In this document: piece after piece, positions 1 to 28,704 of the stretch | Layout: every line of letters begins with the position of its first letter | How positions within the stretch are numbered: position 1 is the stretch's first letter | Assembly: GCA_001179505.1 (NCBI GenBank) | Contig: CDMY01000683.1 | Coordinates: 1-31,059, forward strand | Length of the DNA stretch: 31,059 bases | Origin: Vitrella brassicaformis CCMP3155 | Taxonomy: Eukaryota; Protista; Chromerida | Direction of reading: 5' to 3' | Made by a program: the position numbers and the translations under genes | The notes under the pieces: generated by a model | Told to the model about the DNA's origin: nothing | Database searches by the model: none | Seen by the model: the letters and a program-made list of their open reading frames with translations, nothing else

Positions 1-329
1 CGTCCCATCGCCCGCCACTCCTCGCCACTGCCCCGCTCCAGCGCGTAGACCACCTTCAAGCCGGCCTCCACATCACCGCCACTGTCGAAGGCCAACACGT
101 CCGCCAGGCCGAGATGACTGAGGGCCTTGCCAATGTGCTGCTCGACGAGCATCAGGATCTCGGCCACTTCGCCGGCATTGCTGCCATTGATTTGTGAGTG
201 GAGTGCGGCGCGTCTGTTGGGGTCAACGGACATGGCCATGTCGGCGGCCTTGCTGATGGCCGCGCTGCGCAGCGGGGGGACTGCCCGAGGGGCGGTGGGG
301 GGCCGGCCGTTGGCAGGCCGGGACGACAT
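1..329 (-). CDS. Family B protein, copy B1 (5' part only; runs off the window start)
   Basis: Manual minus-strand translation from ATG 329: MSSRPANGRPP...ISKAADMAMSVDPNRRAALHSQ...VEQHIGKALSHLGLADVLAFDSGGDVEAGLKVVYALERGSGEEWRAMGR. This closely matches ORF 23612-24721 (VEQHIEKALNRLGLADVLAFDIGGDVEAGLKAVYVLERGSGEEWRVMGR). It is missing from the ORF track because no stop lies in the window. Upstream exons may exist (candidate intron 409-347). Confidence 0.85.
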   Translation of the reverse strand, partial: MSSRPANGRPPTAPRAVPPLRSAAISKAADMAMSVDPNRRAALHSQINGSNAGEVAEILMLVEQHIGKALSHLGLADVLAFDSGGDVEAGLKVVYALERGSGEEWRAMG

Positions 330-839
330 CGCCACCAGGGAGTGGTCTGGATGAAGAGGGACACACACATGGGAATCAGACCGAGTGAATTGGACGGCAG
401 GATGCTCACCGTCAAAGCTGGGCGAGATGGCAGCAATCGTCACGAACCGCGGTGACTCTGCAGACACACAGCAGCACACACATCTGGGGCGCACGCACGC
501 AGCGCCATGATCACCGCACAGCCTCACCGATGTCAGTCAGTCACGAGAGCCGTGCGACGGCGAGGCCGTCACAGAAGCGCAGACAAAGCGATGAAATGAG
601 TTCGCTATGCGGACGTCGTCACCTCCCGGCACTGAGGCGGGACGGGTGAGGTCTGCAGGCCGGCCACCAGACACGAAGCAGCAGCCGCTATCTGAAGCTT
701 CTTTTGGATTCTTCTGCCTCTCTGGCTGCCATCTCACCCTCCAGTGAGCTCCAAAGGCCAGCAGCGGTTTCAGGGAGCTCCAAAGGCCACCGCTGCGAGC
801 TTCGCACGGATCTCTCCTTCCTTTTTCTTTTCGCGCGTC

Positions 840-953
840 TCCGGTGCCAACAGGGCGGTGGTGGGTCTGTGTGACATACACAAAGTCGCGCTGTGATGAT
901 ATCAATCGGCACAGAGGTCGCCCTCATCGCTCTGGCTGCAGTTGTTGATCTGA
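840..953 (-). promoter_or_regulatory. Conserved intergenic element E, copy 1 (between divergent B1 and A1)
   Basis: Its reverse complement aligns to 18526-18636 with about 6 substitutions and one 3-nt indel (hand count). The function is inferred only from its position. Confidence 0.6.
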
Positions 954-1242
954 CGAATTGAAGTGCGGTGGGGTGGGCAGCAGGAGGTGATGTTGTCATT
1001 CGTGACAGCGTGTGTGATTTCTCTGTGTGTTTGTGGCGGATCTGTGACTCACAGGGTGAGATGGACCAACCGCCAGGATGCTTCGCCGGCATGTTCAACC
1101 TGTGGCGATGGCTGAAGGCCTCACTCACGGTGAGTCAGGCGAAAAAAGAAAGCACCACATGCAATCATGATGGCGCTGGCATATCTAAGACGACACACGC
1201 TGCGAACGGTGACCAATACTATCGCTGCAGAACGACACAATC

Positions 1243-2337
1243 GTGCAGACACACAGCTGTCTGAGTGTGTGTGATGGTATTGCAGGTGTCAGCACTGCAA
1301 CGCCCGTCAACCAGCAGCAGCAGCATGATAGCGCCGTCAGTGCCTCTGACGTACCTGAGGAGGCAGTGCCGACCGTCGCCGAGTACGTCAGGAGCTACTC
1401 ACAGCTGGAGGCTCTCATCGACGCCCATCCCACCCAATTCACAACCGCCGTCCTCCTGCCCATTCTCAAGCAACTGCTTTCTGCCGTGGTGGAAGGCATC
1501 TTTGGTGCATCTGTGGAGGCGACCGTCCCTCAGCTGGCCCTGGACCGAGCCATCATGGTAGCCATCACACGATGGCTGTTCATGCTGGAGCGTGGGGGCG
1601 ATTGGGGGAGGTGGCGGCCCCATTTGGAGCTGCTCTATCACCTACGCGGGAAGAGCCCATTGGTGCTGGGCGATGAGCATTTCAGCGCGTTCGGCAGCCG
1701 GGCGGCCTTCATCGGCGAGCGCGAGGCGGTCTGCCAATGGAGGGTTCTTAGCCGAGAGGTCAATGTCCGTCGTGGAAGCCAACAGATGCGTCTGATGGAT
1801 GGCTGCCGCCTCCCCTTCCTTCTCGACGCACCCAGCCCCCTCTTCCCTCGCGACACATTCGACGCCGCCGACCCGCCCACACAGCTGGACGGCTGGACGT
1901 ACCCCAGTTACGCTTCTTTGGTGGCGTTCAGCCTCTTTAGTTGGCTTCGTGACGGCAGCTACATCACTTTCTCCAGAGACTGTTCGTCTTACTGTCGTGC
2001 TTCTGCCGCATCTCTTCGTGTGCGTGAGCTGCTGGCGGCCCCTCAAAGCGATGCGGCACAGTGGGGTTCGGGGGCGGCCGTCTTCGACAGAAAGTGGCAG
2101 GTGTGGGCGAGGCCATGGCATGAGCGGCTGGTGGTGCTGGGGAGTGAGGTGATGGGCCAGGGGAACATGGCAGCGATTCGGGTGGAGGATTGGGGAGACC
2201 TTCGTTCTGTCAGAGTGTTTACGACAGAGTCTGCCCCCGACGACCGCACGCGCACTACCGTGATGAGAGTACTAGGGCGGCAGTTGGGGGGCAAGGCGTG
2301 GCGGATGGAGGACGAGTGTGGATGCCTTGCAATGTAG
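1243..2337 (+). CDS. Family A protein, copy A1 (lineage-specific, unknown function)
   Basis: 364-aa ORF with motifs SDVP..VAEYVRSYSQL.ALIDAHPTQF, LE.GGDW, FGSR.AF, PSPLFP..FD.ADPPTQ, QWG.G.AVFD, RLVVLGSE and TTESAP.D.TR, all shared with 16652-17875 and 20818-22908. The true start is uncertain. A possible upstream exon 1061-1129 (MDQPPGCFAGMFNLWRWLKASLT, GTGAGT donor) would join in phase to an acceptor at 1230. Confidence 0.8.
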   Translation: MQTHSCLSVCDGIAGVSTATPVNQQQQHDSAVSASDVPEEAVPTVAEYVRSYSQLEALIDAHPTQFTTAVLLPILKQLLSAVVEGIFGASVEATVPQLALDRAIMVAITRWLFMLERGGDWGRWRPHLELLYHLRGKSPLVLGDEHFSAFGSRAAFIGEREAVCQWRVLSREVNVRRGSQQMRLMDGCRLPFLLDAPSPLFPRDTFDAADPPTQLDGWTYPSYASLVAFSLFSWLRDGSYITFSRDCSSYCRASAASLRVRELLAAPQSDAAQWGSGAAVFDRKWQVWARPWHERLVVLGSEVMGQGNMAAIRVEDWGDLRSVRVFTTESAPDDRTRTTVMRVLGRQLGGKAWRMEDECGCLAM

Positions 2338-2671
2338 GCAAGGCAGATGGCCATTGGCCAACCAGATAGGCCAAGAGTGTGATGCTCGTGACTGGCGTGA
2401 GTCACGTTTGTCTACTCATTTCCGGGAGTGATGTTTTTACGTGCCTTCTTTTATCAAGAATGAGGGCTGGTTGTGTGTGGCGTGGCCATCGCATAGAGAC
2501 AGAAGTAGGATGGGAAAGTAAGACTGCTCGTATCTGCTCGTCCATGGGCGAGAATGAAATGCGTGCATCTCTGCAGCCAGCTCATGAGTCACTCGAACAC
2601 GGCCGCACTTGCACACGCTTTCAACTTAGCCCAGAGCTCATCGACACGAGAAAGGTGTATCTGTTGTATGT

Positions 2672-5600
2672 TCATATTTGCAGCACGTAGGCCTTAAGAG
2701 TGACAGAGAATTCCTGTGTGGACGGGCAGCCAGAGGGCACATAGCCGCCCGACAGCACGACCTTGGCTTGGGCAGTGACCCACATGCCGACGCCAGCCAG
2801 CATGGGCAAAGCTGCCGACTGCAGGGGGAGGACATTCAGGCATTCATTCGCAGAGCTGTTTTGTCTGTCTCTGTGCCTCATCACGTGTGTGTGCGTGCAG
2901 CGTGCCTCTGTAGTATCGCCGTCTCTCATGAAGCTGAATGTCACCTTCTGGCTGCCGCCTGAAGGAACGGTGACACACAAGGAGGCCCCCTTGTGTGTGG
3001 TGCGTGTGGTGCGCGTAATTGTGTGGATGTGTGTGTGGGTGCAGACCGCTCTGCACTGTGCCCTTGCTGCTGTCGACGGTGAAATACTTGGACGCATCGG
3101 ACTGCAGGGAAGACACACACACGTGTGGGTCGATGGAGAGACATATAATTGGCACACACACAGCGGAGAGAGACCTGTAAGATAGCGACATCAAAGTTGC
3201 CGCCTCCGCCCTTGCCCTCGGCCTTGCCCTCCCCACGGGTGCCGGGCGGCCAGCAGCAGCACACCAACAGCGACTGCGTGCTCTGCACCCACAACCACAA
3301 CCACAACCACAACCACACACACACGCACACACACACACACATTGATGCCTGTGCCTGTGTGTAGGTGCTGGGGGAACTGACGGTGCTGCTTTCTTTGTCG
3401 AAGGTCAGGTGGAATTGGCGTGACGGGTCGATTGGTGTCTCTGCCTGCTGCTGCTGCTGCTGCTTGTCCTTCTTGTCGGCAGCAGCCTTCCCCTTGGCTG
3501 CCTCGGGCGTCTTGGTCTCCTCTCTCTCCTGCGGCTCGTCGGCTGCCGATATGTCGGTGGCCAGGGGGTGGACAGATGGCTGCACGCACACACACATAGG
3601 CAGGAGAGGATGCATGTGTAAGAGTGCAGGTACGCACCTGTCGGTCGAAAGCGCATGGAGGCTCGTCGTAGGTGAGGTACATCTGTGTGTTAATGTGTTG
3701 GGGGGGATGGGACAAGAGCACAGAGCACACAAACGCGACAAACGTGTGTGTGTGTGTGTGGCTGTTTGCCGAGTAAGTGAGTAGTTACTTGGTATTTCCT
3801 GCAGGTGGCGTAGAGGTAGAAGTACTGCGGGGGCGAGTTGAATATCGGACACTTGACCTGACAAAGACACAGAAGCGGCACAAATGCATAAGCACATTGT
3901 ACCAGACGCACGTACAGCACATACCCAGTACTTCTCTCTGTAGACGTCTTTCGCCTTGAATGGCCTACGAGCCCACACACACAGAAATGGACATGTGTGC
4001 CCCTGCCGGCCGACAGATAAGCTCACCTGAATGTCACTGTAAGGTCCACCTGCCCGTCTGCCTCCACCGTGCCCTTGGCAGGCACCACAGAGAAGGCAGG
4101 CAGCCTGAAAACACCACCAAACCCACACATAGGCACCTAACACATCCATGTGCGTGTGGCTAAGCTACTTCGCGGACCCATCAGTGTTGGCCGGCTCCCG
4201 CACACACTCAACCAGCGTGTAGGGGAGGGGATACGCAGAGGGATTCTGAATCGACACCGTCTGTGTGAGGAAGTCAGAGTGACCTGCACACGCCCATACA
4301 TTCACACACGCACACATGGATGGATGGATGGATAGATGCGTACGCACCATCGACGAGTGCGTCCATGTCAACGATGCCGTCTGTTGGCACGAGGGCACAC
4401 AGGGGGGTCACTCCACGGCCAGACAGGGGGAGGGAGACGCTGCATTCATATGCGCAGATCCGTCTGTCGTTCTCTCTGTGTGTGTGTGTGTGTCTGTGCG
4501 ATAGAGAGACCTACCTGGTCCTCTCTGAGTGAATGCGCAGCTCTGAGACATACGCCTACACCCCCGCACCCACGGATATGTGCATACATACACAGAAAGA
4601 GACAGACCTGAGTGCTGGGCGGTTTGAAGCGCACGGACAGCGCAAAGGGGCGGCTGCCCACCTGCACACACAGTGTCACACACACAGAATTCCATGTGTT
4701 CATTCATGTGGTGTTGTACAAGCCTACAGGTCTTGGCGCATTCACTGTCGCAAAGCCAGAGGACTGCGGCAGAGTGTCGACCCTTCAGACCCACACACGG
4801 CACAAGAAATACACAAATGTGGGTGTGTGTCCTGCATCGATGGATTACCGACCGAATGTGATGGCGTCCCTCCTGCGGGAAGGCGTTGGTGAGGGTTACG
4901 TGCATTATACTGATGGATGGCGAACATGACACAAAAGCAATAAGTAGGCAGGGAGATATGTGTGTGTGTCTCATTCTCAGATGTGCCCGCCAACCGAACC
5001 GTTCCTCGCCCACAGACACGTCGCCGAAGCGCAGCTCAGACGGCTCGTATCTGCATTGCAGTGGATTCGTGTGCGTGGATATATGTGAATACATTCCTAT
5101 GGATCGGTACCTCAGTGAGGCCGCCACTGTGCACGTGTGCGCTTCCATGAAGACCGTGTGGCTGCTGCCAGCTGGAAGATCGATGCACATACAGGGTCTG
5201 TCTCTGTGTTTGTGTGTGTATGTGTGTGTGTCCGTTCCCCACCATCCCGTCATACCATTCTTGTTGCTTTCTGTGTGGAAGTAAATGGGTATTTTCCAGC
5301 TGCAGTGCACAGAAGTGTCGCTGCGGTCGGGACGGGTGTACCTGCACATTGGCCACAGCCATGCATCGACATGTGGTCACAGAGCAACCCACCTACCGTC
5401 TCCCGCCGGATTGTCGAATGCGCGTGGCGATGTCCGCTTTTTCCTTCACACATTTGTGCATGCAAGACATGCATACGATACGATGTGTGTACTTGTGTCC
5501 ACATATATGTGCATCGATCGGTGGTCCGTACGTACCTGGGGCTCTGTGGCGCTTTGCTCGTCCTCTTTCTCCTCATCTTCTTTCTGCTCCGTACCCTCAG

Positions 5601-8600
5601 CTGTCAGTCACACACGCATCGCATCAGTACGAAGAGAAGCGTGGCATCTTTACCCACCGTCTGTCTGTGTGGGTTTCGGGTCGTCTGTTAGAGTGCGATA
5701 AGCCTCCGTCGGTGTGAAGGCGATCTGTGTGTGCGCGAGAGTGCAGGCACACGCAGCCGTCCATCGCTGTCCATGCTGCCGACCTGTATGCGTCTGGTCT
5801 CCTGAGGGGCGAGTTTTGCGTACAGCGGGCCGATCGACAAGACGCTGTATGCATGTAGTACACGTGCGCGCGTCTCTTGTTTCTCCTTCGCTGTCTCTTT
5901 CTTTTTGTGTGTGCTGGACGGTACCTGAGCTCTACTGGTGGAGAGGCTATGTTGACCGTCTGTGTGTGCACACGCACACACACATCCGTCTTGGCATTTT
6001 CAGGCCTTCGCTCCACTCACTCACTCACCACATGGCTTTTGGTGCTGGTATTTTGGATGACGCAGCTCGCGCGCACCGACTCGTTTACCGGAATGCTGTC
6101 GACATACAGACATGAGACAGACAGGCACACGTGTACACGTCTGCACCGGTCGCAGGGGATGCGCTTGTGTGTACCGACCTGGCGAGTTTGCATATGGTGG
6201 GATATATGCGTATTGGGCAGAAGACGCCCTTGCCCGTGCACTTGATGGGCACCTGCAGAAGAACATTCGCGTCTCGGTGTGTGCAGGCCCCGCAAAGGGG
6301 CAGGTGTGTGTCGTTGGTTGCCTCTTTTGCACACAGGTCGCCGTATTGCACTTTGAGCTTCAGCGTCTCGCTCTGGGTGCATACACAAACCATGCACAAA
6401 CAAAGAGATGAGATAAGGTAGGTTGTGTGTACTTACTACCATGTCCATTGCTGCGTCTGGTGTGTATGTGACCATCAGGCGCTGCGTGTCGCCGCCTGCA
6501 TGCATGTAAAACAACGTGTTGTGGTGTGTTGTGTCAGTGATGTGACGCTTGCCTACCCAGTATGACGCCGATGCTATCTTCCTTCTCGATGGCTGGCCAC
6601 ACACACATACCCACACACGCACGTCTATGTGCATCACACACATCTGCACATACGTACGTGGCTCGTCCTCATTTTGGTTGCTGTCGTCCTGACACACACA
6701 CGCACACGCACACACATACACACACGCACACACGCACACACACACACACACACGGACAAATACACACACATGGAGCCACACATGTGACGTCAACTTACGT
6801 TTTGCGATCCGACGGGAAAAGCCTGCACACAGAGAGAGACACGGAGAGGTACAGACACAGAGAGAGACAGCAAAGAAACAGTCCACATACTCACATAAAC
6901 ACACACACCCATGGGGAAACGATATGTCTCACTTTGAAGATGCTTCTCATCTTGGTCAGCCCGTATGTGCAGGGCAGCATGCATCTGTTGGTCAGCCGCA
7001 CCAGCAGCGACCGGCCAGTACCCACAAACACCTGCATCCGTCGGCACACACGGGGATGCATGTGTTTGTGTCATCAATAATCCTGCCCTCGCACCGAGCC
7101 AAAATGCAGCTGCCTGCAAACACAGAGAGACACATACGGTGCTACCATGCAAATGCTGGCGCCGAGCCACGAACTTGGGCGTTATGTTTATCTTTGCCAG
7201 AGTGAGAGTGCCTGTGAGGTGCGTCACCGCCGGCAACACCTGCATATGTACCCAGCATTCACGCATTGATGTCCATATGTGTGTGGGCGTGTAGGTACCT
7301 GGTCAGCACCCCTGACAACCACAGGGATGTTGAAGCGATCGCACACCACACTAGCATCTGGTAATGATGATGGCGCAGCGACCTGATGGATGAACGACAC
7401 CCGTGCACATCCGTGTGTGCTGCTGCTGGTGGTGCGTACTGTCTCTGCTGCTGCTGGTGGTTGCTGCTCGTCGGCATCCTCGGCGCTTCCCCCTTCGTCT
7501 TCACCGCCCTCCTGCGCATTCGTGAATTCATTAACTAACACGCTCTTTCTCGTCTGCATGCCCTCTCTGTGGCTTATTCCTCCCCCTCTGTCTCACGTAC
7601 GTACGTCATCAGCACTTTTCTGTTCTTCCTGCGCGTCAGCCGCTCCCTCCTGCACACAGACAGACAGACAGACAGACACACCCAACTACACTGACATACA
7701 GAAAGACAGGGGGACAGAAGTGTGGGCGGATTTGTGTGCCTGTGTCTGCTGCTGCTGCTGCTGCTGGTCTTGTTGCTCCTGTAGGTGGTCGGTATATTGT
7801 GGGTGTCGGGTGCAGAAGCCCTCATGGGGGGCGAAGCGCACGTTGAGCACCAGAGACGAGTGGCCCTGCGTGTACACACACACACCCATTGGTGTGTGCC
7901 AGGTAGACGGGCAGATGGACATACACACTTGTATGAAGGCCATGGTGGGGTTGAAGGAGAGCTCCTCGGTGTTCTGGCTGGGCTGGTCGATCCATATCTT
8001 CATTGCCGTCGGCTGCCTGCATTGCAGTGCAGTCCATTCCGTTGTGTATGCACACACACACAGGCGATTTCCGCTTTTTTACCTGTTGCTGACCACAATC
8101 TGGTGGCGGAATGTGTGACCTGCCAGCCATAAGCGCACACACGGGTACATTCATGTGCGTTGATATGTCTCTCTCTGTCTCTCTGTGTGTCTCGCTGACC
8201 GTAGGTGATGGTGTTGAAGTCATAGATCGGCTGCTCGATGTACACCGGCACATCCACACACTCACAGCTGCACACACAGATACAGACACATACGCAGCTG
8301 TGCTCTGTGATAGTGTACCAGCCCACCTTAGGATGGCCACAGTGCTGTCCGTGTTCTGTGCGTCCAGCACAAACGCGGCAGTGTACACGCCGCTCTCCAC
8401 TGGGGAAAACTTCACGCACAAGGCACAGCAAGACACACAGTGGGTGGCGGGCGACTGATGCCGCTGACCCACCCTCCCACCCACCGTGAATTTGATCTTG
8501 TGCGTGTCGTGTGCCATGAAAGTGCCCTCCTTGCTGACGATGTCCAGGCGATCCACAAAGGCTTGGGAGCTGTCAAGTGCTGCATACACACACGCACACA

Positions 8601-11600
8601 TGCGTACCATTGTTTTCACGTGTGAATGCGCACACGTACATGCAGTCTCCTGCTGTATTTCGTTGATGAGCTTCTCGTCGTCTGTGAGCAGGTGGCGGGC
8701 CCTCGTCTGTCCATTGTGGTGTTGTGGACACACAGACACTCTCATACACGCAAGAAAAGGTCAGTCAGAGTGCCTACCTGCAAGTCTTCTGTAGGCATCA
8801 GTGGCCTGAGCTGATAAAGGAGAGAGAGAGACATACATGTGTGTGTATGTGTGTATGTGTGTGTGTATGTGTGAGGAGGAGCTTTCAACAGACAGATCCC
8901 AGCGTACATGGAAGTCGGCTGCAAGGGCCCCCTCATTCTTCACCGTCAGAACGGACGACACACTCTCGCCCCTGCACACACACAGGTAGTAGGTTTCTTG
9001 GGGGGAAGGGCTGGGCTGGCATACCTGAGCACTCGTTTCATCCTGATGTGTATGTATGAGTCGGCTGCAGATTGCGGTGGATCGAACACCAGCACTGCCA
9101 CACACACGTACACGTGTTGCACGTCTTCATGTCTCTCTGCGTGTTAAAGCACAGACCCGTTCTCTTTTTCCTGCAGACGATGGGGATGTCCTCCCTGCCG
9201 GTCTTGGCCAGCAGCGGCAGACAAGTGTACACGTCCTCATTCACCTTCATGCACCCATGACATGCGCACAGCTCCGTGTAGATAGATGCATGTCGCACGC
9301 ACCATTTTGTCCAGATTTGTCGTGCACACATACCTTCGGTGAGAACTGAATGTTGAGAGTGCACGAGGTGCCTGCAGACATCCGGCCGGGCGGGGGCAAG
9401 GACACCTGTACACTCACACATACACACATCGACCGACACGCACAAGTCCATCCATCCATCCATCCATCGATCCATGTGTGTGCGAAGCTTACATGGAAGA
9501 AGTCTCTGGCTTTATCCTCGATGGGCATCGTCCGGAAGTGGTTGAACGAGAGGCTCACGTTGGTCAGCTGCACCTGCTGCGCGTACACCTCACCCACCTA
9601 CGCACACACACAGACAGACACGTGCGCATTTTCCATTTATATCCTCCGCATCTGTGGTGTATGTGTGTGCTTGTGTACGTCGAAGTCGTTGAACTGAATG
9701 ACGGCTGGTTTTGAGAGGAAGGAGCGGCCCCTGTGGACGCGATTGCACACCTGAGTGAGTGAATGGCGAGCGGCGAATGCATGTGTGTGTGTGTGTGTGT
9801 GTGTATGCATGCAGAATGGTGAGTACCTTCTGCACTTCCCCCTGCTCAATCCACTTTCGGTGCCTTTCACGCGCCCTCTCTCTGCATATGTGTGTATGTG
9901 ACGGCAGACAAATACGTCATGTATATGTAGATGTCTGTTGGTCGAGCGATCACCGGTATGATCTCTCCAGCTGTGTGTCCTTGGGCACCCAAAGCTTGCC
10001 CTCGCCCTCATCAGATCCGTCCTCTTCCTGCGCGTGCATGACATGTGCTTGTGGGGTGTGGATGTTTGTGAATCGGTGGGTGTAGTGTGGGAGTGAAGAA
10101 AAGTGTGCAAGAGTACCCACGTCGGTGTCTTCATCTGAGGTGTCCATGGCCCGTGCGTGGGGCGCCTAAGCACACACACACACACGTATTACATGTCTGT
10201 CATCATATACCTCTCTCCCTCTCTGTGTCTATCGATTTTCTACCTCCTCCTCTGTCTCTTGTTTGTCTTCTTGTGTTGCCGTCGTGAAGGGGTCCTCTTC
10301 ATGCGCCAATGGATCCACAAACTGCGTCCCGTCCTGTCATATCCACACATACATACAGACACACAAATGCGTCTGTGTGTCGTGCGAATGGGTACGTGCC
10401 TGTGTGACAAGTCCCTTTCGTTTCAGCTTGGTCTCCTCTCTGGTCAGGATGGCCTCATGAATAAGGCCAGCCGAGCCAGCAGGAGGGGCCATCCTACACA
10501 CGTATCCACACACACACATCCACACACACATGTGCAAGCCGTCCTCGAGTGTGTGTATGGTTACCCCATTCCTATTTTGGGCGTCTTGATGAGTGTGAGC
10601 TTGGAGGGAAATATGTGCTGCAGACGACTGGTCGGATCCAATGTCTCGTTGCCAGCTACAAACATCCACACACACACACACACACACACGCGTGCGCACA
10701 GACAGAGAGAGAGAGATGGATGGATGGATGGATGGGTGTGGGCACTCACTTACCGATAGTTTTGTGTCGGATGTATTTCGCGTTCTGCTGGTCCTTGTTC
10801 AGGCCACCTGAATGCGCAAAGCAGTGCTGAGAACCATGCAAGGGCATAAATACACACTGACACCCCTGTGTGTACTCACCAGCTGCAGCGCGCTGTGACA
10901 GTCGCTCGGCCAGAGCTCTCCTGCAAACATACACACGTACATGCGTGTACGTGTACCTGTGTGTATCTGTGTGTATGGTGCACACCGACGGACCGACCGT
11001 CTTTTCTGTTCGTCTTTGTTGTGTGTGTGTTCCTCTGCGGCCATCCTTCGGGCGAGCACCTCGCGGCCCTCACGCAACCTCCCCTCTGCTGCGCTGTGCG
11101 TGCTGTCCTGTGGTGTGTGGACATGCGGGAACACATACTCACATTTGCAGTGTGGCGGATTGTGGCTGCCTGCCTGCCTGCCTGTTGTTTCTTGAGAGCC
11201 TCGCGTCTGAAAATCTCATAGGGGTTGATGCCCTCGCTGAATGAATGGATATACACGCATTCACACATAGGTGCCTCCCTCTGTGCGGATTGGGTGGCCC
11301 CAAGTACCCTGCCTACCTCATAAGCCGCTCTTTGTCCCTTTCCAGCCTCTCCTTCATTGCATTCTCGGCCTTGACGTGACGCGCGCGCACTGCCGACAAA
11401 TGAGATTTCACCTGAATGAATGAATGCACATTCCATTCATGCAGACATCCTCGCATGTCATCCCTGTGTGTGTGTGGGGGGGGGGGGAGGAGGGGAAACG
11501 TGCCTTGTCAATGTTGCCTTTGAGATTCACGATCCTGTCTGCCTTTGCAGTGAACTCGTCCTCCTCTGCCTCACGCACAAGCGCCTCGTCGTGCCTCATG

Positions 11601-13475: not shown

Positions 13476-15458
13476 ATGATGCTGTCGAGCAACGCTTCGC
13501 ACGATGAGGAAATCGCCGTCAGCGACATCCACACCACAGGTACACACACACACACTCACACACACACACACGCACTGCACGCATTCGTTCTGCCAACGTA
13601 TGTTTGTATGCGCCGTTCTCCCCACATGCAGGCCCCCTCACCAGCAGCAACGGCAAGCAGCGCCAGAACGGCACAAATCGTTTTTTAGCGTGGCTGTCGG
13701 TGGCTCTCACTGTCGCCCTCATAGCCGTATCGGCAGCACTCACCGGTGCGTACGGACATACCCATGGGCGCGTGAATGTGCACATGTGCGCGCGCGTGTG
13801 TGTGCAGTGGTGTGTCTGGGTGCTGCTGGGGGCAACAGCAAGGAGGCTGCACGCGTCAACCAGACCGGTGCGTACCCGCCCCCAGCTTTCCCCGCTGTGC
13901 CCTCATCGAGCACCGAGCCCATCGGTCAGTCAGTCCAGTCGGCAGATGCACCACACACAAGTGCGCTCCTTCCGTCACATTGTGTGTGTTACGTAGGCAT
14001 GATGTCCATCCCTGACCTGTACGAGGCCAACATGGAGGAGATATCATCCTTCGGCGCACTCACCATGCAGGCGCGGCCACACGCACACCCACCGAGACGA
14101 ACACTCAGTCATGGATGCGTGTGTGTTTGTCAATGAGTGAGTGCAGCTGTTGGGTGGGCGAGACGGCTGGTTCGGTGTCATCTCTGCCCAACAGGACGAG
14201 AGGACAGGTGGGCAGACACCCACCATACATAACATAACATAGCCCACACATACCAATGGGGATGGGTATGTGCGTCTCCCCATGCACCCAGGCAATGTCA
14301 TCGTCTTGCTGACACCGTCTGCCCCACTGAGCGAGGTATACACTTTCCACTCGTCCGTCCGTCCGTCCATCCATCCATCCATTCGTGTCTGTCTGTCTGT
14401 CTGTCTGTCTGCCCACGCACAGGATGAGATATATCGTCTGGATCAGGAGACTCAGGAGGAGTGGAACGAAATCGTAAGTGCAGTGCAAACATGTGGTGCT
14501 TCCGAACAGGCCTGCCTCGATGAATGTGCGAACAAACAGGACTGCGACCCTCTGATCGAGAAACTCGCCCCCTGGACACTCACCGTCGAGAAAGGTACGT
14601 AAGTGTCTGAGCCACTCTTCTTTGCTGCTTGGTTGGCAAATGTGTGTGTCTTTTCAGCTTCGGCGAGCGTTGCGGACGGCTGTGGCCGCACACAGGGCGT
14701 TGTGGAGGTGAGGACACACACTTGTATGCAGGCAGGCACACACACTCACACATGTCTGTGTTGCGCCGTAATGTGTGTGTATATCAGTGGCAACCTGAGC
14801 AGCCTGAAGCAGACGCAAACCAACTGAGTGCGTGTTGACGATAAACACATGGACGACGATCCACACCTGGTCTGTGCTGTGCAGGTGCTGACAAGAAGCC
14901 CCGCATCGGTGCCGAGGAGGGCGGCTCCAGCAGCAGCGACAAGGGCGATGACCAGCAAGAAGACGACGGAGGTAACATAACAGAGGGAGAGACAGAGACA
15001 TGCCTGACTGACACGGCTTTGTGCTGTGTGAGTGTGTGTGTTTGTAGGGGATCGGCGTCGTTTGGGTCAGTACAGGTCTAAGGTCGGCAAGCTGTGTCTC
15101 GTGCAGTCCTGCGGCGGTATCACCTGTAAGTGACCACCAGTGCACCACTCCACGACGCCACACCGGCGACACACACCACACACGTTGTGTGTTGTCTGTC
15201 TGTCTGTGCATTGCAGTCAGGCTGAACCCCTACCTTGACGCACAGAGGCCCTACCTCGGGATGGCCTACAATCCCTACCCCTACAGCCAAGCAGTGGCAG
15301 CAGCGGGGGCCCCGCCCCCGGTGCAGTACGTCCAGCCGGTGGTCAACGGGGGTGCGGCGGGCAATGCCATCGGCGCCCCTGGCACTGGCGTGGCGCCACT
15401 TGGGAGCGGCATTGGTGAGGTGCCGGGCAGCGTCCCCGCCGGAATCGGCGGGCCTTAG
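13476..15458 (+). CDS. Hypothetical membrane-anchored/secreted protein (about 11 exons)
   Basis: Exons stitch in phase: MMLSSNASHDEEIAVSDIHTT / GPLTSSNGKQRQNGTNRFLAWLSVALTVALIAVSAALT (hydrophobic helix) / GMMSIPDLYEANMEEISSFGALTMQ / LLGGRDGWFGVISAQQDERTG / NVIVLLTPSAPLSE / DEIYRLDQ...TCGASEQACLDECANKQDCDPLIEKLAPWTLTVEK / ... / GDRRRLGQYRSKVGKLCLVQSCGGIT / RLNPYLDAQRPYLGMAYNPYPY...GIGGP*. No family recognised. Confidence 0.75.
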
Positions 15459-16651
15459 ACGAGATGCCATGAGAGAGAGGTCCGTGCAGTGTCAGTGTCA
15501 GTGTGTTTGTGTGTGGAGTTGGTCTCGTGTGGTCTATCTAGTACTCGCCTTTTTATTGTGTGTCGATACGGTATGGGATCGATGAGGTGGATGACGCAAT
15601 CGTGTGCCTTGTGTGGTTTTGTTTTCCTTTGTGTGAAGCAAGGCGGCCGCACAGAGAGCCACAAAGCCACACAGAGAGCATTGCGTGTATGCTATGTAGC
15701 CCTGCCATGCGTGTGTGTATTTTCTTACCACCCGATGGGAGTAGGTGCTTGTCGATTGTGGCGGATGAGATGAGTGTGAGTGCGTGATATACTATATATG
15801 CCTGCCTCCCTCCCCGCCCCCTCTGTGTCAGTCGTGCGTGAGACACAACGTGTGTGCATACGCGTGTGTGTGCATGGGGGTGCGTACGAGGGATCGCACA
15901 GAGAGACTGTCTGACCTCTGAGTGAGTGAGTGGGTGAGACCTTTTTCAGTTTCTTCAACCAAAGCCACACGGTCGATCGACGATCGATGCAGACAAGCTC
16001 ATGGACACAGGCAGATCACAGCAGTGACACCTGTCAGCAGTACAAACAACGTATGCGCTTCCCGATCGACGCACAGACAGACAGACAGACAGACGGGCTA
16101 CCGCACACACAGCACACCCCTCCATGTGGCACACGCACGAAGACAAAATTAGCAGGCCCCACGTATAATAGGGCCTTAACAAGCACCCCAGCCATCCCCG
16201 CGTTCGCCTGCAATGGGAAAAAAGCCTCCCAGCACAACGACCCGATTTACTTGCAAGCTTAGACGTGCAACAGCCACTCACTCGACTAGGAGGGGGGCGG
16301 GAGAGAGGGAGGGGTACAGGTGCGGATCGTTTGTATGATGCGTCACAGTCCATCCGTCGTGGATGCGCATGCGTGTGTGTGTGCGCTGGCCATACATGTC
16401 GAAAGCGAATTAACGTCATGTCAACACGCGCACGCACTCAAACAAACAATACAGCAATCCATCCATCCATCTATCCCCATTACAGCCCATCACTGTCGTC
16501 GAAGGTCACCCGTGGGCGGGAGGCACGCACCGAGCACTCACACACTGCATGGTTTCGTCCATCAGACGCGGTCTGTCTGTCTGTCTGTCTGTCTGTCCGC
16601 TGACCGATGAGGAAGACAGTGAGGAACTCTCTTCTGCCTCCCTTGACCAAT

Positions 16652-18094
16652 TCACCTCTCAACCCGTTCCCACCACACTGTGTCTCCCAGGTCATCCCCC
16701 AACACACCCATCACGGCAACACGCGTGCGGTCATGCGGGGCCGACTCGGTCGTGAAGATGACAATCTTTCGTGCATCATCATCCCCATCCCCTCTCTCTC
16801 TCGCCAGCCAAATCGCTGCCATCTTCCCCTCGTCGATCGCCTCACTCCCCAAGACCACCAGCCGCTCATGGCGTGCCCCCTCACGCTTCTTGTCGAAGAT
16901 CGTCACCCCTGGCCCCCACTGTGCCACTCCGTTGTTGTTGTGAGAGGCCATCAGCAGCTCATTTACACGACGGTATGCGGCGGAAGAAGGGCAGAAACAC
17001 CACAACCACCGGATGCGCCGGAGGTTCTGGTTTTGGCGGCCGCGACGGAGCCAATCGACCAGGACGAAAGCCACCATCGACGAGTAAGTGCAATACGTCC
17101 AGCTGTCCATCTGCGTGGGCCGGTCGGCGGGGTCAAACGTGTCAGGAAAAAGTGGGCTGGGACTGGCGATACAGGAGGGCAGACGGTATTCGTAGTGCCA
17201 CGAGTCGAGAATCTTGATGCCGGACATCAGACGTATCTGTTGTCCTCCACTATGGAAAGTCAACCCCCGGCTGAGTATCTTCCACTGGCGGACCGCCTCG
17301 CTCCGGCCGACGAAGGCCGTCCGGCTGCCGAACACGCTGAGGTAATCATGCCGCAGCACCAACGGCACCTTGCCGCAAAGGTGATAGAGTAGCTGCAGAT
17401 GCGGCCGACACCTTGCCCAATCGCCACCATACTCCAGCGTGAACAGCAGCCGGGTCAGCTGCTCGACAACGGCACTGGTGGCCCCGCCCTGGGTCAGCTG
17501 GTAAAGGGGCACCTGCACCAGGCCGCCAAAGATAGTGGCCACCATGAAGGGCAGCAGTCGTGTGAGGATGGGCAAGAGGACGGCGGCGGTGAATTGTGTG
17601 GGATGGGCGTCGATGAGGGCCTCCAGCTGCGAGTAGCTCTTGACGTACTCGGCGATGGTGATTGCGAGGTGCTGCGGCACATCAGCGGCACTGATGGCGC
17701 GCTCAACTGGCACACACACACACAGACACAAACATATAGACAGCGGTTTCAGGCACATTATGCATTGCTTCTGCGAACCATTGATGGTGCCGTTCATGAG
17801 TGTGACGATGAGGAGGGCGGGGGGCGGGCGAGAGGTGACAAACACCTGATAGTTGAGGTGGCCGTACCTACACACACACGCAGAGAGAGAGAGAGAGAGA
17901 GCTGCACTGACTGTGTGTGTTGTCTAACCATTCACGGCATCGATGCTGTCTGTGTGTCCGTACCAGGTTGGTGGGTTGTCCCAGGACCCTCGCCCGTCGT
18001 GCATGACGAATTCCATCCCGCCGCTCTCATCAGGGACCTCAACACGAACCTTCACCCAGCCGCGCCCAACGCCCTGGTCACCGAGGGTAAGCAC

Positions 18095-18125
<31 letters not shown>

Positions 18126-18284
18126 CATGCACACACTCAATGTACGCGGACTGATTCCCTCCGACCCCTTTGTGTGTGCCTTGCGGACCTTCATGTGGAC
18201 GTCCCGCCATGTGCCTTGTCCGTGAGGACAGTAGTGCACCGCACAATTGGGCCAGCCCGTTTGGTATCGCAACTCAATCAGCAT
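16652..18284 (-). CDS. Family A protein, copy A2, with N-terminal CBM25-like starch-binding module
   Basis: Exons 18284-18180, 18073-17964 and 17867 onward join in phase (0, then TG|G = Trp) into the open frame of ORF 16652-17875. The N-terminus reads MLIELRYQTGWPNCAVHYCPHGQGTWRDVHMKVRK-GVGRGWVKVRVEVPDESGGMEFVMHDGRGSWDNPPTWYGHLNYQV, followed by the family A domain. Confidence 0.75.
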
Positions 18285-18525
18285 CCGATTCGCTCGACAA
18301 CCGACACAACAAACGGATCGTCAGCCTGTCAAGAACACACCGCGTGAACACACGCTGATGATGCACGCCCTCTTCTCTCTGTAGATGTACCTCTGTCTGC
18401 CACCGGCAAAGATCAACAACGCAATGAGGTATCTCAAACCTGCCACAAACACACAGAAAACACACACAGTGGCATCGCTGACCCTGTGATCCCCCTCCGG
18501 CTTGTCCTCCCTTTACACCTCGTCC

Positions 18526-18636
18526 TCAGATCAGCTGCAGCCAGAGCGATGATGCCGACATCTGTGCCGATTGATACCATCACAGCGCGTCTTTGTGTAT
18601 GTCACACAGACCCACCACCGCCCTGTTGGCACCGGA
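18526..18636 (+). promoter_or_regulatory. Conserved intergenic element E, copy 2 (between divergent A2 and B2)
   Basis: Near-identical to the reverse complement of 840-953. Confidence 0.6.
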
Positions 18637-18839
18637 ATGCGAAAAAAAGGGGAAGCCCGCAGGCAGGCCCACGAATTGCGCCAACTTAGCTCGCAGGCCG
18701 ATCCGGGCGAGCAGAAAACTGGGTTTGTTGGTTGCGCTGTCAACTATGTTTGTGTGGATGCAGATCTCTCTCACAGGCACGCCACGCTGAAGCTCATTCA
18801 GCCGCTGGCCTTTCATGTGCTGACTGAGTGATTGTGGCG

Positions 18840-19879
18840 ATGTCTGATTCGTTGCCCGACGACCTGTGGCGCCGGCGCATTCTGCCGTCCCTTCTCGTCC
18901 ATGAGGCGGTCTGTGTCCGAGCGACCTGCCGGGCGAAGGCGGCTCTAGTGACGACCGCTGTGCTGCTGATGGAGCGCATCGACGGCTCCCTCGCCCGCCG
19001 CTCCCTCACCGGCCTCATCGACATCGACCGCACCGCCCCTCTCCCATTCACCTATGTGCTGCGGGCGGCCTATGTGCTGGAGCAGGGCAGCAACGAGTGG
19101 CCTGGGATGGGGCGGTTCATCCGGCTGGCCGCCATCTATCGGCTGACGCCTGCCAACGGGCTGCCCCTGGTGCTGTCGGCTCAGTGGCTGACAGCCCACC
19201 TTCCCAGCAGGACGGCATTCCACCAGCTGCCATTGGCGATGGCCATCTATCGGCTGTTCGGCCACCTGCTCACACACAACACACACAGCCTGGCGCTGCA
19301 GCCGGCCGACAACGGACACTATCGGATTGGCAACATGACCTTTCGTGTGGTGCCGTTGGGTGAGCTGCCGGGCGGCCATCCTTATGCTGACGGCTACAAG
19401 AGGACCGATCCCGCCATCCGACGGGGCGGCAACCTCTACCCCTCCTTCTCGGCAGCATTCCTGCTTGAGAGGCTGCTCGTCAGGTGGTGGGATGGAGAGG
19501 GGGTGGGTCAGAGGCTGGTGCTCACTTCACACATCGGCCGTGATGACGCTCGCTATGGCCGTCTGCTGAGGACTGACTCCATCACAGAGGATCTGGGCAT
19601 CGTCGCCGACTGGCGTTACGACCGGGGCGATCTGGATGCTGCTGGTGCGACTGACTGTCGTCGTGTGGTAGTGAGCGGCTTCAGACCAGGCGAGACCGTC
19701 GCTGCCCATCTGAGGGTGACGCCGGGCTGCATCCAGCTGTACACTATGAGCCATCTGCTGCCAATAGGTCTGCATCACTCGCCCACCGCTTTCCCATCTC
19801 GGAGCCCGTGTGGCGCCGTGTGCTGCGGCGGTACAATCTGGAGAGTGACGTCATCGACAGGGGGACGGTGATGTGGTGA
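18840..19879 (+). pseudogene. Family B copy B2, F-box-like N-terminus, apparent 1-nt deletion near 19746
   Basis: ATG 18840 gives MSDSLPDDLWRRRILPSL... The body aligns with B3 (LE.GS.EW..MGRF.R.A.IYRLTP, AFHQLPL.MAIY, QADNG.YRIGN, DYRDDRGDL). After TACACTA the B3-homologous tail (EPSAANRSASLAHRFPISEPVWRRVLRRYNLESDVIDRGTVMW*) lies in another frame and ends at TGA 19877-19879. An assembly error cannot be excluded. Confidence 0.7.
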
Positions 19880-20118: not shown

Positions 20119-20419
20119 NNNNNNNNNNNNNNNNNNNNNNNNNNNNNNNNNNNNNNNNNNNNNNNNNNNNNNNNNNNNNNNNNNNNNNNNNNNNNNNNNN
20201 NNNNNNNNNNNNNNNNNNNNNNNNNNNNNNNNNNNNNNNNNNNNNNNNNNNNNNNNNNNNNNNNNNNNNNNNNNNNNNNNNNNNNNNNNNNNNNNNNNNN
20301 NNNNNNNNNNNNNNNNNNNNNNNNNNNNNNNNNNNNNNNNNNNNNNNNNNNNNNNNNNNNNNNNNNNNNNNNNNNNNNNNNNNNNNNNNNNNNNNNNNNN
20401 NNNNNNNNNNNNNNNNNNC
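20119..20419. other. Assembly gap (~300 N)
   Basis: Run of N. Confidence 0.98.
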
Positions 20420-20794: not shown

Positions 20795-20801
20795 TGACTC
20801 T

Positions 20802-20863
20802 TCAGATCAGCTGCCAGTCAGAGAGATGATGGCAAGATGCATCGAGATCGATAGCCTCTCAGC
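20802..20863 (+). repeat. Diverged partial copy of element E (copy 3)
   Basis: TCAGATCAGCTGCCAGTCAGAGAGATGATGGC...GATCGATAGCCTCTCAGC versus TCAGATCAGCTGCAGCCAGAGCGATGATGCC...GATTGATACCATCACAGC at 18526. Confidence 0.55.
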
Positions 20864-22908
20864 AGGTCCCATGAAGCCACGCTGTCATCCAACCGACTCT
20901 CGTGCTCCATCCGCCACACCTTGCCCCCCAGCTGCCGCCCCAGTACTCTCATGACGGCATTGCGCGTCCTGTCGTGAGGGACAGACTCCGTCGTGTACAC
21001 TTTGACAAACATTCCTTTCCCAGCCCGGAAATCCACAAAGTAAATGACTGCGGTATTCGCCCCTCCCATCACCTCACTCCCCAGCACCACCAGCTGCCAA
21101 CGCCATCGACCCGCCCAGCTCTTTTCGAACACCGCCACCCCCGGCCCCCACTGTGACGCATCGCTGTGAGGGGCCGCCAGCAGCTCACGCGCACGCCGGT
21201 GTCCGAAAGAAGCCGGAGAGAAAGACCACCCGTTTTTGATCCAACGGGTAGTACTATCGTCGCCTCGAACAAGCAAGCCGCGGAGCCAGTCGAAGAGAAC
21301 GAAGGCCACCATCGATGTGTAGGTGGGGTGCACTTCGCTGTCCAGCTGTGTGGGCCGGTCGGCGGGGTCGAATGAATTCGGAAAGACGGGGCTGGACGAG
21401 ATGAGCAGGGAGGGGCGGCTGGACCAGACAGTCTTACGGCAGAGAATCTTGTCGCCGTCCATCAGCAGTCTCTCTTGGCCGTTGTCATTCACAGTCACCC
21501 CTCGGCTGATTATCTTCCACTGGCGGACCGCCCCTCTTTTGCCAAAGAAGGCCGCCCGTCTGCCGAACACGCCGACAACGACGAAAGACAATCTGCGCAC
21601 TGCTGTTGGCAGAGACACTCAGGCACCGAGCCAGCCATTCACCGCCATCGTGCCGCTCCCGTCACACTTCACTCAGCAGGTGCTCCCCCAGCAAACCCAT
21701 CGCCGCACTGCGCGTCTGGTCGTGCGGGGCAGACTCGGTCGTCGTGACATCAACAAATTGGTGATCGTCCCAATCGTCCAGCCGAATGACCGCCACGTTT
21801 CCCTCAACGACCGCCTCACTGCCCAGCACCACCAGCCGCTCATGGCCCTCACTCCACCGGGGTTTCCTGTCGAACACGGCCGCCCCCGCCCCCCACTGCG
21901 CCGCATCGCTGGGACGGGTCGCCAGCAGCTGACACACACGCCGGAATGCAGCAGAGGAATGTGACCAGTCCTCGATGCGACAAATGTAGTAGTCGCGCTT
22001 GACCAGGAGAACAGGACGAATGCCACCATCGATGAGTAGGTGGCGTATGTCCAGGCCATCAGCTCTGTGGGCGGATCGGCGGGGTCGAATGCATTGGGGA
22101 AGAGGGGGCTGGGTGCGGCGAGGATGGTCGGGAGGCGCCAGGCCCAGCCAGCGTGGAGGCGAATGTAGTTGCCGTACATCAGGCATATCTGTTTGCCTAG
22201 ATCACGGAAAGTCGCCACACGGCTAAGAACCCTCCTCTGCTGGACCGCCTCGCTCTCGCCGATGAAGGCCTCCCGGCTGCCGAACGCGCTGAAATGCTCA
22301 TCGCCCAGCACCACTGGCCGCTTCCGGCGCATGTGATACAGCAGCTCCAAATGAGGCCGCCACCTCGACAAACCGCCGCCACCCTCCAGCATCTTGAGAT
22401 GGCGGCTCAGCTGCTCGATGGCGACTGCCATGCGGCAGCCGTGGCTGAGCGCCGCAGGAAGCGGCAGCCGGGGGATGACCCTCATCAGGAATGAGCCGAG
22501 GCCGACAATGGGCAGCAGCACGCCCAATACACGCATGAGGAGGGGCAGGAGAAATCGGCTGAGGGCGCCGCGACGAAGGGACGAGGCCATCGGAGCAGCA
22601 GCCGCCACGTCCATGGCCAGCTGAGGAATGGGTACCTCCACGAGAGCACCAAAGACGGCTTCCACAACGACGGGTAGCAGTCGGATGAGAATGTGTAGGA
22701 TGACGGTGGGGTTAAATTGTGTGGGGTGGGCGTCGATGAGGGCCGCCAGCTGTGAGTAACTCCTGACGTACTCGGCAACTGTTGGCGCGAGATCTTGCGG
22801 CACGTCAGAGACGCTAATGCCGCACTCATGCTTCTCCTGCTGCTGGTGCTGCTGGTGGTTGGCAAACGACGCTGTGCTGGTACCTGCCCAACAGACCGCC
22901 ATACTCAC
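20818..22908 (-). pseudogene. Family A copy A3 with two tandem A domains, disrupted
   Basis: ORFs 21673-22908 and 21662-22186 are one A domain split by a 1-nt deletion near 22002 (W-[L]KRDYY). TGA at 21662-21664 sits where other copies have Trp (KVWR). A second frame break near 21575 leads into a second A domain (ORF 20818-21618). A possible upstream exon starts at ATG 23043 (MSAAAAAADGVGPS). Confidence 0.75.
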
Positions 22909-23341
22909 AAACCTGTGTGCCTCCGGATTGTGTCACTGTGCAGCCTCCCTGTTAACTTCAGCTGCCGACGCAGATGACGATGAGGATGCCTCGTCAGCTA
23001 TAGAGGGACCGACTCCATCAGCAGCAGCAGCAGCAGCCGACATCTGCACACCCACAAACAGAAACGTCACGAACATCATGGGAGCGAATGAGTGAATGTG
23101 TGGCGCCTCATCGATCTGTGAACATCCGAGCGGCTTTCTTTGCCTTCCGCACCTCAGTCGGCGGCTTGGCTGCCCCTGGTGGGCTCAGATACCTGCGGTG
23201 GAGTGCTCTCCTCCTCTTTCTCTCAACCGCACCAACACGACGGAGAGTGCCGGAAATCTGCCACAACCACACAGAAACCACACCGGTTGTCATTGCTGAT
23301 GTCATCAGGCCCTCCTGCCTGCCCTCTCTCACCTCAACTCG

Positions 23342-23402
23342 TCAGATCAGCGCCGCTCAGAGAGGAGGGTGGCACATCTGTGATCGATATCATCTCGGCA
23401 GC
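23342..23402 (+). promoter_or_regulatory. Diverged copy of element E (copy 4, between divergent A3 and B3)
   Basis: TCAGATCAGC...CAGAGAGGAGGGTGGCACATCTGTGATCGATATCATCTCGGCAGC, colinear with copies 1 and 2. Confidence 0.5.
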
Positions 23403-23638
23403 TGTTTGGGCATCTCCCAGGCATTCCGCGCGGCCCCGCTGTCAGCAAAACGCCCCAAAAAGGGAAGAGATTCTGCAAGCCAAGCTCGCAGACCGATGCA
23501 GCGGGCGGTGGGGGGCCCGAGCTCTCAAGCCACTCAGTGAAGAAGGTAAAGGGACGGAAGGGGGGCAAGCGAAGCATGAAAAGTGCTGAAAAGAGCTGTC
23601 GTGTCTGATCTGTGCGGCGGCAGCAGATAGCTCACGCA

Positions 23639-24787
23639 ATGCCTGAGACCCTCAAGACACTCCCGATGCAGCCCACTGGTGCGGCGCCCTCGTCCCGTCC
23701 CCCCAGCCCTGCCCTCTTCCAGCCCGCCGACCTCTTTGACCTGTCATTGCCCATCAGCAAGATGGCCGCCATGGCCATGGCGACTGACGAGGCCAAACGA
23801 GCCGCTCTCCGCTCGCAGCTCGCCACCCGCACTCGGCAACAGGAGCTGCTGGGCCACACTGCGGAGACCGTCAACAGCACCCTGCTCAACGCCGTCGAGC
23901 AGCACATCGAGAAGGCCCTCAATCGTCTCGGCCTGGCGGACGTGTTGGCCTTTGACATTGGCGGTGATGTGGAGGCCGGCTTGAAGGCGGTCTATGTGCT
24001 GGAGCGGGGCAGTGGCGAGGAGTGGCGGGTGATGGGGCGGTTCCTTCGGATGGCCTTCATCTACCGGCTCACCCCCAACACGACGCGGCCTCTCCGTCTG
24101 TCGGCCGACTCGCTGCCCACAGGAACGGCCTTCCACCAGCTGCCCCTCACCATGGCCATCTACAAGATCATCGGACAGCAGCTCACATACGCAGGGACCA
24201 GCCTGGTGCTGCAGCAGGCCGACAATGGGGCCTATCGAATCGGCAATCAGTTCTTTCGTGTGGTGTCATTGGGTGAGCTGCCGATGGGCTATCGCTATGC
24301 TGAGGGCTACAAGCGGACCGACCTCGCCATCCGACGGGGCGTCAGGCTCTTTCCCTCATTCTCGGCATTCCTGCTGGGCAGGGTGCTCCGCTGGTGGTCG
24401 GATGAAGATGGAGTGGGCGACAAGACGGTTCTCGCTGCTCACGTCTACCGTGGCGACCCTCGCTATGGCCGCCTGCTGACCGACACCATCACGGAGGATT
24501 TGGGCATCGCTATCGATTATCGCGATGACCGGGGCGATCTGAATGATGCTCATCCGATTGACTGCCGTTTTGTGATTGTCAGCGGCTTCCGATGCAACAA
24601 GACCGTGGCTGTTAATCTGAGAGTGGGGTTGGCCGAAATCGTGCTGCGGACGACCGAGGCTTCTGTTGCTGATCGATCTCGGTCACTCGCTGTCCGCTTC
24701 CCCATTTCGGAGCCTCTGTAGCGCCGTCTGCTGCGGCGATTCGAGTTGGAGACCGACGTCATCGACGGGGGGACGGTGGTGGGGTGA
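23639..24787 (+). CDS. Family B copy B3; premature TAG at 24719-24721, 22 codons before the ancestral stop
   Basis: ORF 23612-24721 (first ATG 23639). After the TAG the frame continues RRLLRRFELETDVIDGGTVVG* (TGA 24785-24787), homologous to the B2 tail, where the same codon is TGG. Confidence 0.75.

Positions 24788-28673: not shown

Positions 28674-28704
<31 letters not shown>

Follow-up and report, generated by a model that had tools for sequence, protein, structure and literature searches.

Does a pair of divergent genes that recurs three times on one contig represent an obligate partnership, or does it record the way in which a gene family has multiplied? This question is raised by contig CDMY01000683.1 of the alveolate alga Vitrella brassicaformis CCMP3155 (GenBank assembly GCA_001179505.1), one of the free-living organisms most closely related to the apicomplexan parasites. 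The window analyzed here is this whole contig (C683; 31,059 bp), in an assembly of 72.7 Mb and 1,064 contigs. An original prediction, made from the letters of the window alone, had described two gene families, A and B, and had read their head-to-head arrangement as an old, obligate and co-regulated module of two components that was duplicated as a unit. We consider it probable that A and B belong to one superfamily, confined to Vitrella and evolving fast by birth and death, in which a unit of inverted paralogues was amplified into alternating arrays and in which pairing is frequent and not obligate. With about 190 or more loci, this apparently Vitrella-restricted and rapidly evolving superfamily is among the larger unexplained gene sets of the organism.

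The three pairs lie where they had been placed, and each B gene in the window indeed has a divergent A partner. An ATG stands at every proposed start codon, and the A-B start spacings of 732, 556, and 596 nt in pairs 1, 2, and 3 agree with the predicted range of about 550–730 nt. What had been taken for a single gene, A3 (20818-23043, minus strand), is a frameshifted near-full copy (A3a) followed by a truncated copy (A3b). The family members of the window are as follows.

1-329, minus strand: B1, a family B gene truncated at the contig end so that its 5' part is present; ATG at 329; matches the N-terminal region of B3; tblastn with P0002 covers residues 27-124
1061-2337, plus strand: A1, family A gene that is intact and annotated as protein P0064 (399 aa); exons 1061-1210 and ~1285-2337; tblastn at 100% identity in two blocks
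16652-18284, minus strand: A2, coding region of family A whose N-terminal exons are CBM25-like, annotated as protein P0079 (419 aa); tblastn and spliced contig
18840-19879, plus strand: B2, short-headed subtype; frame change near 19745-19770; open frame ends at 19871
20818-21618, minus strand: A3b, 5'-truncated family A copy; product P0108 of the open reading frame (ORF), 214 aa; matches A1 residues ~185-394
21641-23043, minus strand: A3a, family A copy of nearly full length; changes frame near 22003/21973 and contains an in-frame TGA
23639-24787, plus strand: B3, family B gene whose product P0001 begins at 23666; in-frame TAG at 24719-24721

The inverted unit and its copies across the genome

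The two families had been read as two separate components, and profile comparison relates them to each other. An hhalign comparison of 33 A with 40 B proteins gave a probability of 88.7% and an E value of 2.5e-6 over 222 columns, which cover the C-terminal two thirds of both. The motifs LERGG..W, RPL.L, and TTE are common to A and B, and the AlphaFold2 models present the same order of strands and helices in the C-terminal halves (A, predicted local distance difference test score (pLDDT) 71; B, pLDDT 84 and predicted template modeling score (pTM) 0.83). From these sequence and model comparisons we take A and B to be remote, ancient paralogues that have a C-terminal module of about 230 aa in common and carry different N-terminal heads. 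Because of this homology, the cassette is an inverted pair of ancient paralogues and not a union of two unrelated components. Each family has two head subtypes, AEYVRSYSQLEALIDAHPTQF and AQCL.SYADLCAFRRIDK.R in A, and a long MQPTGAAP and a short MSDSLPDDLW form in B. Residues 104-217 of A1 also find weak matches (E 1e-7 to 1e-3, 24–36% identity) at more than 20 further loci, for example on C307, C308, C406, and C1019, which hints at a possible wider superfamily around the LERGG..W..RP region.

Three six-frame searches of the genome identified at least 61 merged A loci and at least 128 B loci, totals that are lower bounds as only the best candidates were scored. When family neighbors within 2.5 kb are counted, the junctions are distributed as follows.

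A-B junctions: 20 divergent, 12 convergent, 0 tandem
B-B junctions: 7 divergent, 2 convergent, 1 tandem
A-A junctions: 1 divergent, 1 convergent, 3 tandem

Alternating arrays such as that on C868 (B- A+ B- A+ B-) indicate tandem repetition of an inverted two-gene unit, and they fit the proposal that A and B were duplicated as a unit; beyond the window the unit recurs in divergent and convergent and never in tandem order. The proposal that the pairing is obligate is not supported, although the intact pairs may still conform to it. A member of the other family lies head-to-head at 20 of 128 B loci (16%) and 22 of 61 A loci (36%), and both B/B pairs and solo copies exist. Among the 30 best B loci, whose 1.5-kb flanks were searched by tblastn, 11 have a head-to-head A, 6 a head-to-head B, and 11 no family neighbor on either side. 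Two independent B searches, the second using another B subtype as query, detected no B adjoining any of the 34 solo A loci; solo status is here defined by the coordinate tables of the three genome searches together with the 30 fetched loci.

A simple course of events could produce such a pattern. An inverted duplication would have created the head-to-head pair around a short spacer, which probably acts as a compact bidirectional promoter, and unequal crossing-over would have amplified the resulting unit of about 4 kb into arrays in which divergent, convergent, and again divergent junctions alternate. Later losses, gene conversion, or exchange of partners would then have left solo copies, B/B pairs, and partners with incongruent histories.

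As for its distribution, all named homologues of the window proteins come from V. brassicaformis CCMP3155, in agreement with the chromerid origin that the original prediction had assumed. A search of 1.84 billion representative proteins with the A profile gave 45 matches, and the 10 that were checked, the weakest included, are all from Vitrella. Two metagenome contigs in ENA (ERZ893784; loci L031 and L032) carry relatives of A and B with 81–89% DNA identity to the nearest reference locus; B and A are convergent on one of them, and on the other a B head and an A are divergent (the head-to-head pair of L032). The arrangement thus survives in a diverged relative. As judged from these matches, the superfamily is seen only in V. 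brassicaformis and in diverged metagenomic relatives, and a second, diverged Vitrella-like organism is represented in public data. MMETSP transcripts are found for both families, and A2 is spliced in the contigs.

Fast divergence, decay, and the conserved leader exon

The large divergence among the proteins had been read as a sign that the arrangement is old yet maintained. Among 14 intact single-exon B genes (91 comparisons) the closest pairs have a synonymous divergence (dS) of 0.20–0.28, and the median ratio of nonsynonymous to synonymous divergence (dN/dS) is 0.64 (0.51–0.89); for the main exon of A at 11 loci (55 comparisons) dS is 0.29–0.90 and the median dN/dS is 0.55. High dN/dS at modest dS indicates that the divergence of the proteins reflects their fast evolution and not great age. 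The older reading is thus contradicted on both sides, by dS of 0.2–0.9 with dN/dS of 0.55–0.65, and by the damage found in both complete B genes of the window and in A3.

This damage takes several forms. In B2 the frame switches about 40 codons short of the usual family end and the tail continues in another frame to 19879; since contigs of three sequencing runs (X3, X5, and X6) span 19352-19867 without an indel, the lesion is not an assembly slip. In B3 the TAG stands 21 codons upstream of the usual family stop, while the usual tail stays in frame to 24787. In-frame stops occur at 10 of the 30 best B loci, at different codons and as a mix of TGA, TAG, and TAA, which marks these loci as pseudogenes and not as cases of recoding; stop-codon reassignment and readthrough were rejected on the same ground. 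The homology of A3a extends over 22884-21641 and that of A3b over 21567-20896 (tblastn), and A3a is a probable pseudogene. The two have just 68% DNA identity, and no recent internal duplication is therefore involved. B1 and B3 are 92% identical over 147 nt (1-147 vs. 23893-24039), compared with 73% for B2 and B3, a closeness that could stem from recent conversion or duplication from one contig end to the other. No more than one pair in the window can be fully intact, and the candidate is pair 1, whose B1 is cut by the contig end.

The partners also differ in their histories. For 11 head-to-head pairs, a Mantel comparison of the A and B distance matrices gave r 0.16 (p 0.16), and r 0.29 (p 0.064) when restricted to the core regions. 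In cassettes L001, L006, and L009, dS is about 0.25 for B vs. 0.45–0.6 for A. The weak correlation and the unequal dS together indicate that the histories of the A and B halves have been separate in part, as a result of exchange of partners or of conversion among the B copies. The original prediction had named incongruent A and B trees as a result that would speak against it, and the partner distances come near to that result, being not clearly congruent (Mantel p 0.064–0.16).

The spacers of the three pairs contain the following elements, among them a short upstream open reading frame (uORF).

794-802, minus strand: 9-mer AAGCTCGCA, exact, in the pair-1 spacer, towards B1
840-956, plus strand: conserved leader element upstream of A1, in the sense of A, with short uORF MISIGTEVALIALAAVVDLTN*; 91% identity to 18523-18636
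18189-18640, minus strand: 5' leader exons of A2, of which exon 1 (18519 to ~18636) is the conserved element; contigs of runs X1 and X6
18687-18695, plus strand: TAGCTCGCA, motif match with one mismatch to AAGCTCGCA, in the pair-2 spacer, towards B2
23482-23490, plus strand: 9-mer AAGCTCGCA, exact, in the pair-3 spacer, towards B3

A common non-coding element between the start codons had been predicted, and it is indeed shared, strongly between pairs 1 and 2 (840-956 vs. 18523-18636, 91% identity over 117 nt) and weakly with pair 3 (895-1041 vs. 23256-23394, 70%). It is not an untranscribed element. Spliced contigs run from 18519 into the A2 exons across minus-strand introns that are all GT..AG (18440-18518 and 18326-18390 within the leader, and 18074-18188 just downstream; the sites are canonical once the reported cut offsets of the contig joints are corrected), and the element is therefore the transcribed first 5'-leader exon of A2. 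It has 7 copies in the genome, all of them in A/B spacers (C377, C683, and C350) and most of them 95% identical; the A1 copy has 95% identity to four copies on C377. The leader exon of about 110 nt is also seen at L030:3042-3149, and its short uORF is similar in A1 and A2, with the consensus M[VI]SIGT[DE]V..IALAA.

The leader diverges by about 9% between loci (91–95% identity), against a coding dS of about 0.6 (0.63 for A1 and A2). Conservation of this degree suggests constraint or else gene conversion on a very local scale. A search of Rfam with the leader and the window matched no family, the element folds no better than shuffled sequence (z-score -0.85), and the three copies compared for covariation are too alike to be informative. 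The leader exon of A stays nearly constant while the coding sequence drifts. The 9-mer of AAGCTCGCA type is located between the leader and B in all three spacers. A fourth exact copy of AAGCTCGCA occurs at the end of the window (31023-31031, plus strand).

Leads on function and the rival explanations

The original prediction recognized no described function for either family, and this judgment stands, with no clear match in Pfam, PDB sequence searches, Foldseek, BFVD, or ESM Atlas. Pfam was searched with the window ORFs, 33 A members, and 40 B members under strict and permissive settings (E up to 10), and returned CBM_25 (PF03423) in two B members and nothing else. Sequence profiles of the whole families and of single domains gave no relevant match in PDB; TALE matches to the A head in the same searches were dismissed as a short leucine/proline stretch. 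Foldseek comparison of the A and B models with PDB gave nothing, with none for B at E ≤ 0.001, and neither BFVD (Foldseek) nor ESM Atlas (by shape and by features) gave a match. The name TLDc, which UniRef attaches to P0075, is not borne out, as none of the 33 A members matches PF07534 at E up to 10.

The CBM25 lead may extend to A2. A spliced contig of run X6 connects 17610-17703, 17958-18072, and 18188-18324, and the CBM25-like N-terminal exons (17958-18325, minus strand) lie in this spliced contig and so belong to the A2 mRNA. Residues 1-75 of P0079 have no CBM_25 (PF03423) match in Pfam at E ≤ 0.01, and P0079 has a short local match to the CBM_25 region of the B member P0012 (11 of 22 residues, E 1e-4 in a single comparison) with the motif FV..DG.G.WD.

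Two further leads come from the folds and the heads. With VIA-align, whose noise guide is Z 7–8, residues 117-247 of B align (matches within 109-299) with 2icg (Z 6.0 over 109 aa), 2prv (5.3), FBXO3 (9kbf_C, 5.1), 2pag (4.3), and Knr4 (5j1b, 4.2), which are SUKH/SMI1-KNR4 proteins; the matches recur, stay below that guide, and may hint at the alpha+beta fold of SUKH type. Among the 40 B members, Pfam gives no SUKH/SMI1_KNR4 match at E up to 10, and the profile of the B middle domain finds no SUKH protein among PDB sequences. The A model gives weak adaptin-appendage and CENP-N matches (Z ≤ 5.3) and no SUKH match. The A head has, by eye, an F-box-like pattern (LPxEV..IA..L..Y..L..F.RIDK), and the UniRef label of A member P0082 is F-box protein; an F-box profile match is absent among the 33 A members (hmmscan, E up to 10). 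When the whole genome was searched with PF12937 and PF00646, 49 and 51 places matched, and not one of them is an A or B locus, and the profile of the A head finds no F-box protein among PDB sequences. The A model has helices at 74-83, 87-96, and 103-122 (pLDDT 66–77), and its sole F-box structural match is FBXO42 (Z 3.8).

The SUKH (SMI1/KNR4) family includes human FBXO3, which combines an F-box with a SUKH domain, and the alignment of B together with the F-box-like pattern of the A head would recall its layout; it differs in that A and B have no Pfam or PDB profile match, in that the Z-scores of 4.2–6.0 fall under the noise guide, and in that the A model is without SUKH matches. Comparable as well are F-box and adaptor families that have expanded in single lineages of plants and Caenorhabditis (for example FBA, FTH/DUF38, and MATH-BTB), which like A and B are large and taxon-restricted, lie in tandem arrays, and undergo birth and death with elevated dN/dS and many pseudogenes. 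Unlike there, F-box membership is not demonstrable in A and B, the domain is undescribed, and the alternating inverted arrangement is atypical. Tentatively, then, the common module may be a protein-binding domain set on interchangeable heads, helical and F-box-like in A, helical in B, and with starch-binding CBM25 inserts in a few members. With similarly low confidence, the family could be a diversifying repertoire of adaptors or recognition proteins and not of enzymes. Were the weak F-box and SUKH leads to prove true, an alveolate would possess a new and diversifying set of receptors for ubiquitin ligases.

The arrangement could alternatively be kept by selection, with A and B as a co-regulated functional pair, either a paralogous heterodimer or a sensor and executor in the manner of paired nucleotide-binding leucine-rich repeat receptors (NLRs), and we regard this as rather unlikely. 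Paralogues often heterodimerise, and at each of the 32 adjacent A-B junctions the genes lie on opposite strands, at 20 of them around a spacer of about 0.5–1.3 kb; the strongly conserved leader exon, the promoter-like 9-mer in all three window spacers, and the head-to-head B and A kept in the diverged metagenomic relative all fit such a pair, as does a putative extra CBM25 domain in some members of both families. The paired plant NLRs RRS1/RPS4 and RGA4/RGA5 are likewise paralogous head-to-head genes with a short common spacer, lie in fast-evolving clusters, and have an extra integrated domain in some members, the place that CBM25 would take here. Yet A and B have no NB-ARC, TIR, CC, or LRR domain in Pfam, belong to an alveolate alga, are known from sequence alone, and are not obligately paired. 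The partner is missing at most copies of both families and B/B head-to-head pairs exist; pseudogenes occur among the paired copies (L010, L011, pair 3, and the B2 tail); and partner distances are not clearly correlated, with partner dS about two-fold different. The orientation counts are moreover non-independent, as they go back to few ancestral duplication events, and head-to-head neighbors are common throughout the genome in Vitrella, whose closely spaced genes are head-to-head at a rate above chance (Woo et al., 2015; PMC4501334). Histone pairs (H2A-H2B and H3-H4) resemble the cassette as head-to-head two-gene units with a short bidirectional spacer and tandem amplification, and differ in the same respect, since the two members of a histone pair are strongly conserved, stoichiometric, and invariably together, whereas A and B diverge fast, decay, and are often solo. 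A more elaborate version of the pair is improbable. It would treat A and B as a paralogous recognition pair that follows the logic of paired immune receptors with an undescribed domain; an F-box-like A would couple B, or a target bound by B, to ubiquitination, diversification would occur under conflict, CBM25 would provide baits or localizers, and the leader with its uORF would set the dosage of A. A complex prediction with the intact head-to-head pair of another contig (P0076 residues 50-421 and P0023) scored 0.00 with an uncertain fold of the partner, and speaks neither for nor against.

Decay alone might also explain the arrays, which would then be mostly functionless segmental duplicates, present through recent amplification and encoding proteins without a current role. 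In-frame stops in one third of the best B loci, the damage to A3a, A3b, B2, and B3, and a high gene-wide dN/dS of 0.5–0.9 would suit this account, which is nevertheless unlikely: dN/dS is consistently below 1 over the 91 B and 55 A comparisons, many copies are intact and have annotated full-length products, transcripts are present with A2 correctly spliced, B yields a confident AlphaFold2 model (pLDDT 84, pTM 0.83), and the family persists in a diverged relative. The original prediction had also listed mobile cargo and a toxin/antidote-like selfish locus among the candidate roles. A high copy number over many contigs and conserved non-coding parts in the repeated unit would be expected if the cassette travelled as cargo with a selfish or mobile element, for instance a non-autonomous transposon. 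We rejected this reading, which is very improbable, as there is neither a mobility gene nor a terminal repeat: Pfam detects in none of the members a domain of a transposase, integrase, reverse transcriptase, or toxin, and self-comparison of the window reveals no terminal repeats or sharp unit borders, similarity ending near the coding ends. The copies are moreover 67–92% identical, which is short of near-identity, and lie in local arrays rather than scattered singly, and the strongly conserved element is confined to its 7 genomic copies inside A/B spacers.

Several observations weigh against the birth-and-death superfamily of inverted paralogues that we prefer. The zero count of tandem A-B neighbors and the pair at L032 would equally be expected from selection on the pair, and a dN/dS below 1 means that many copies are still constrained, which is compatible with a pair function. 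As the locus lists are lower bounds, the true paired fractions may be a little higher; upstream of some solo A genes there is DNA like that of the spacers, which takes in a portion of the B-head region, and a few of these loci may be decayed pairs. The dS values were estimated by the Nei-Gojobori method (NG86) and are possibly biased, with a G+C content at third codon positions (GC3) of 0.71–0.76. The functional part draws on fold scores of Z 4–6, under the noise guide of 7–8, with no F-box or SUKH profile match in Pfam or PDB. If the preferred reading is right, the combination of one superfamily, an amplified unit of inverted paralogues, and non-obligate pairing narrows the question to what the 230-aa module binds and to the reason for the constancy of the A leader exon.

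Remaining features of the window

Between and after the pairs, the long ORFs in 2400-16600 and 25700-30100 had no match in a Pfam search, and the ORF at 2941-4149 (minus strand; 402 aa) has no homologue among 5.8 billion proteins. In a genome with 58% G+C, these long ORFs may not be genes, and the two unrelated genes predicted between the pairs are putative. One assembly gap falls among the A/B copies.

20119-20418, no strand: assembly gap of 300 N in the 3'-3' spacer that separates the stops of B2 and A3b

This gap is embedded in a GT/CA microsatellite and no family reading frame crosses it. The distance from the B2 stop to the A3b stop is 947 nt including the 300 N, and the other convergent A-B junctions measure 377–1157 nt; continuity of the sequence over the gap is plausible. 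A second gap of 300 N lies at 27037-27336, outside the A/B pairs.

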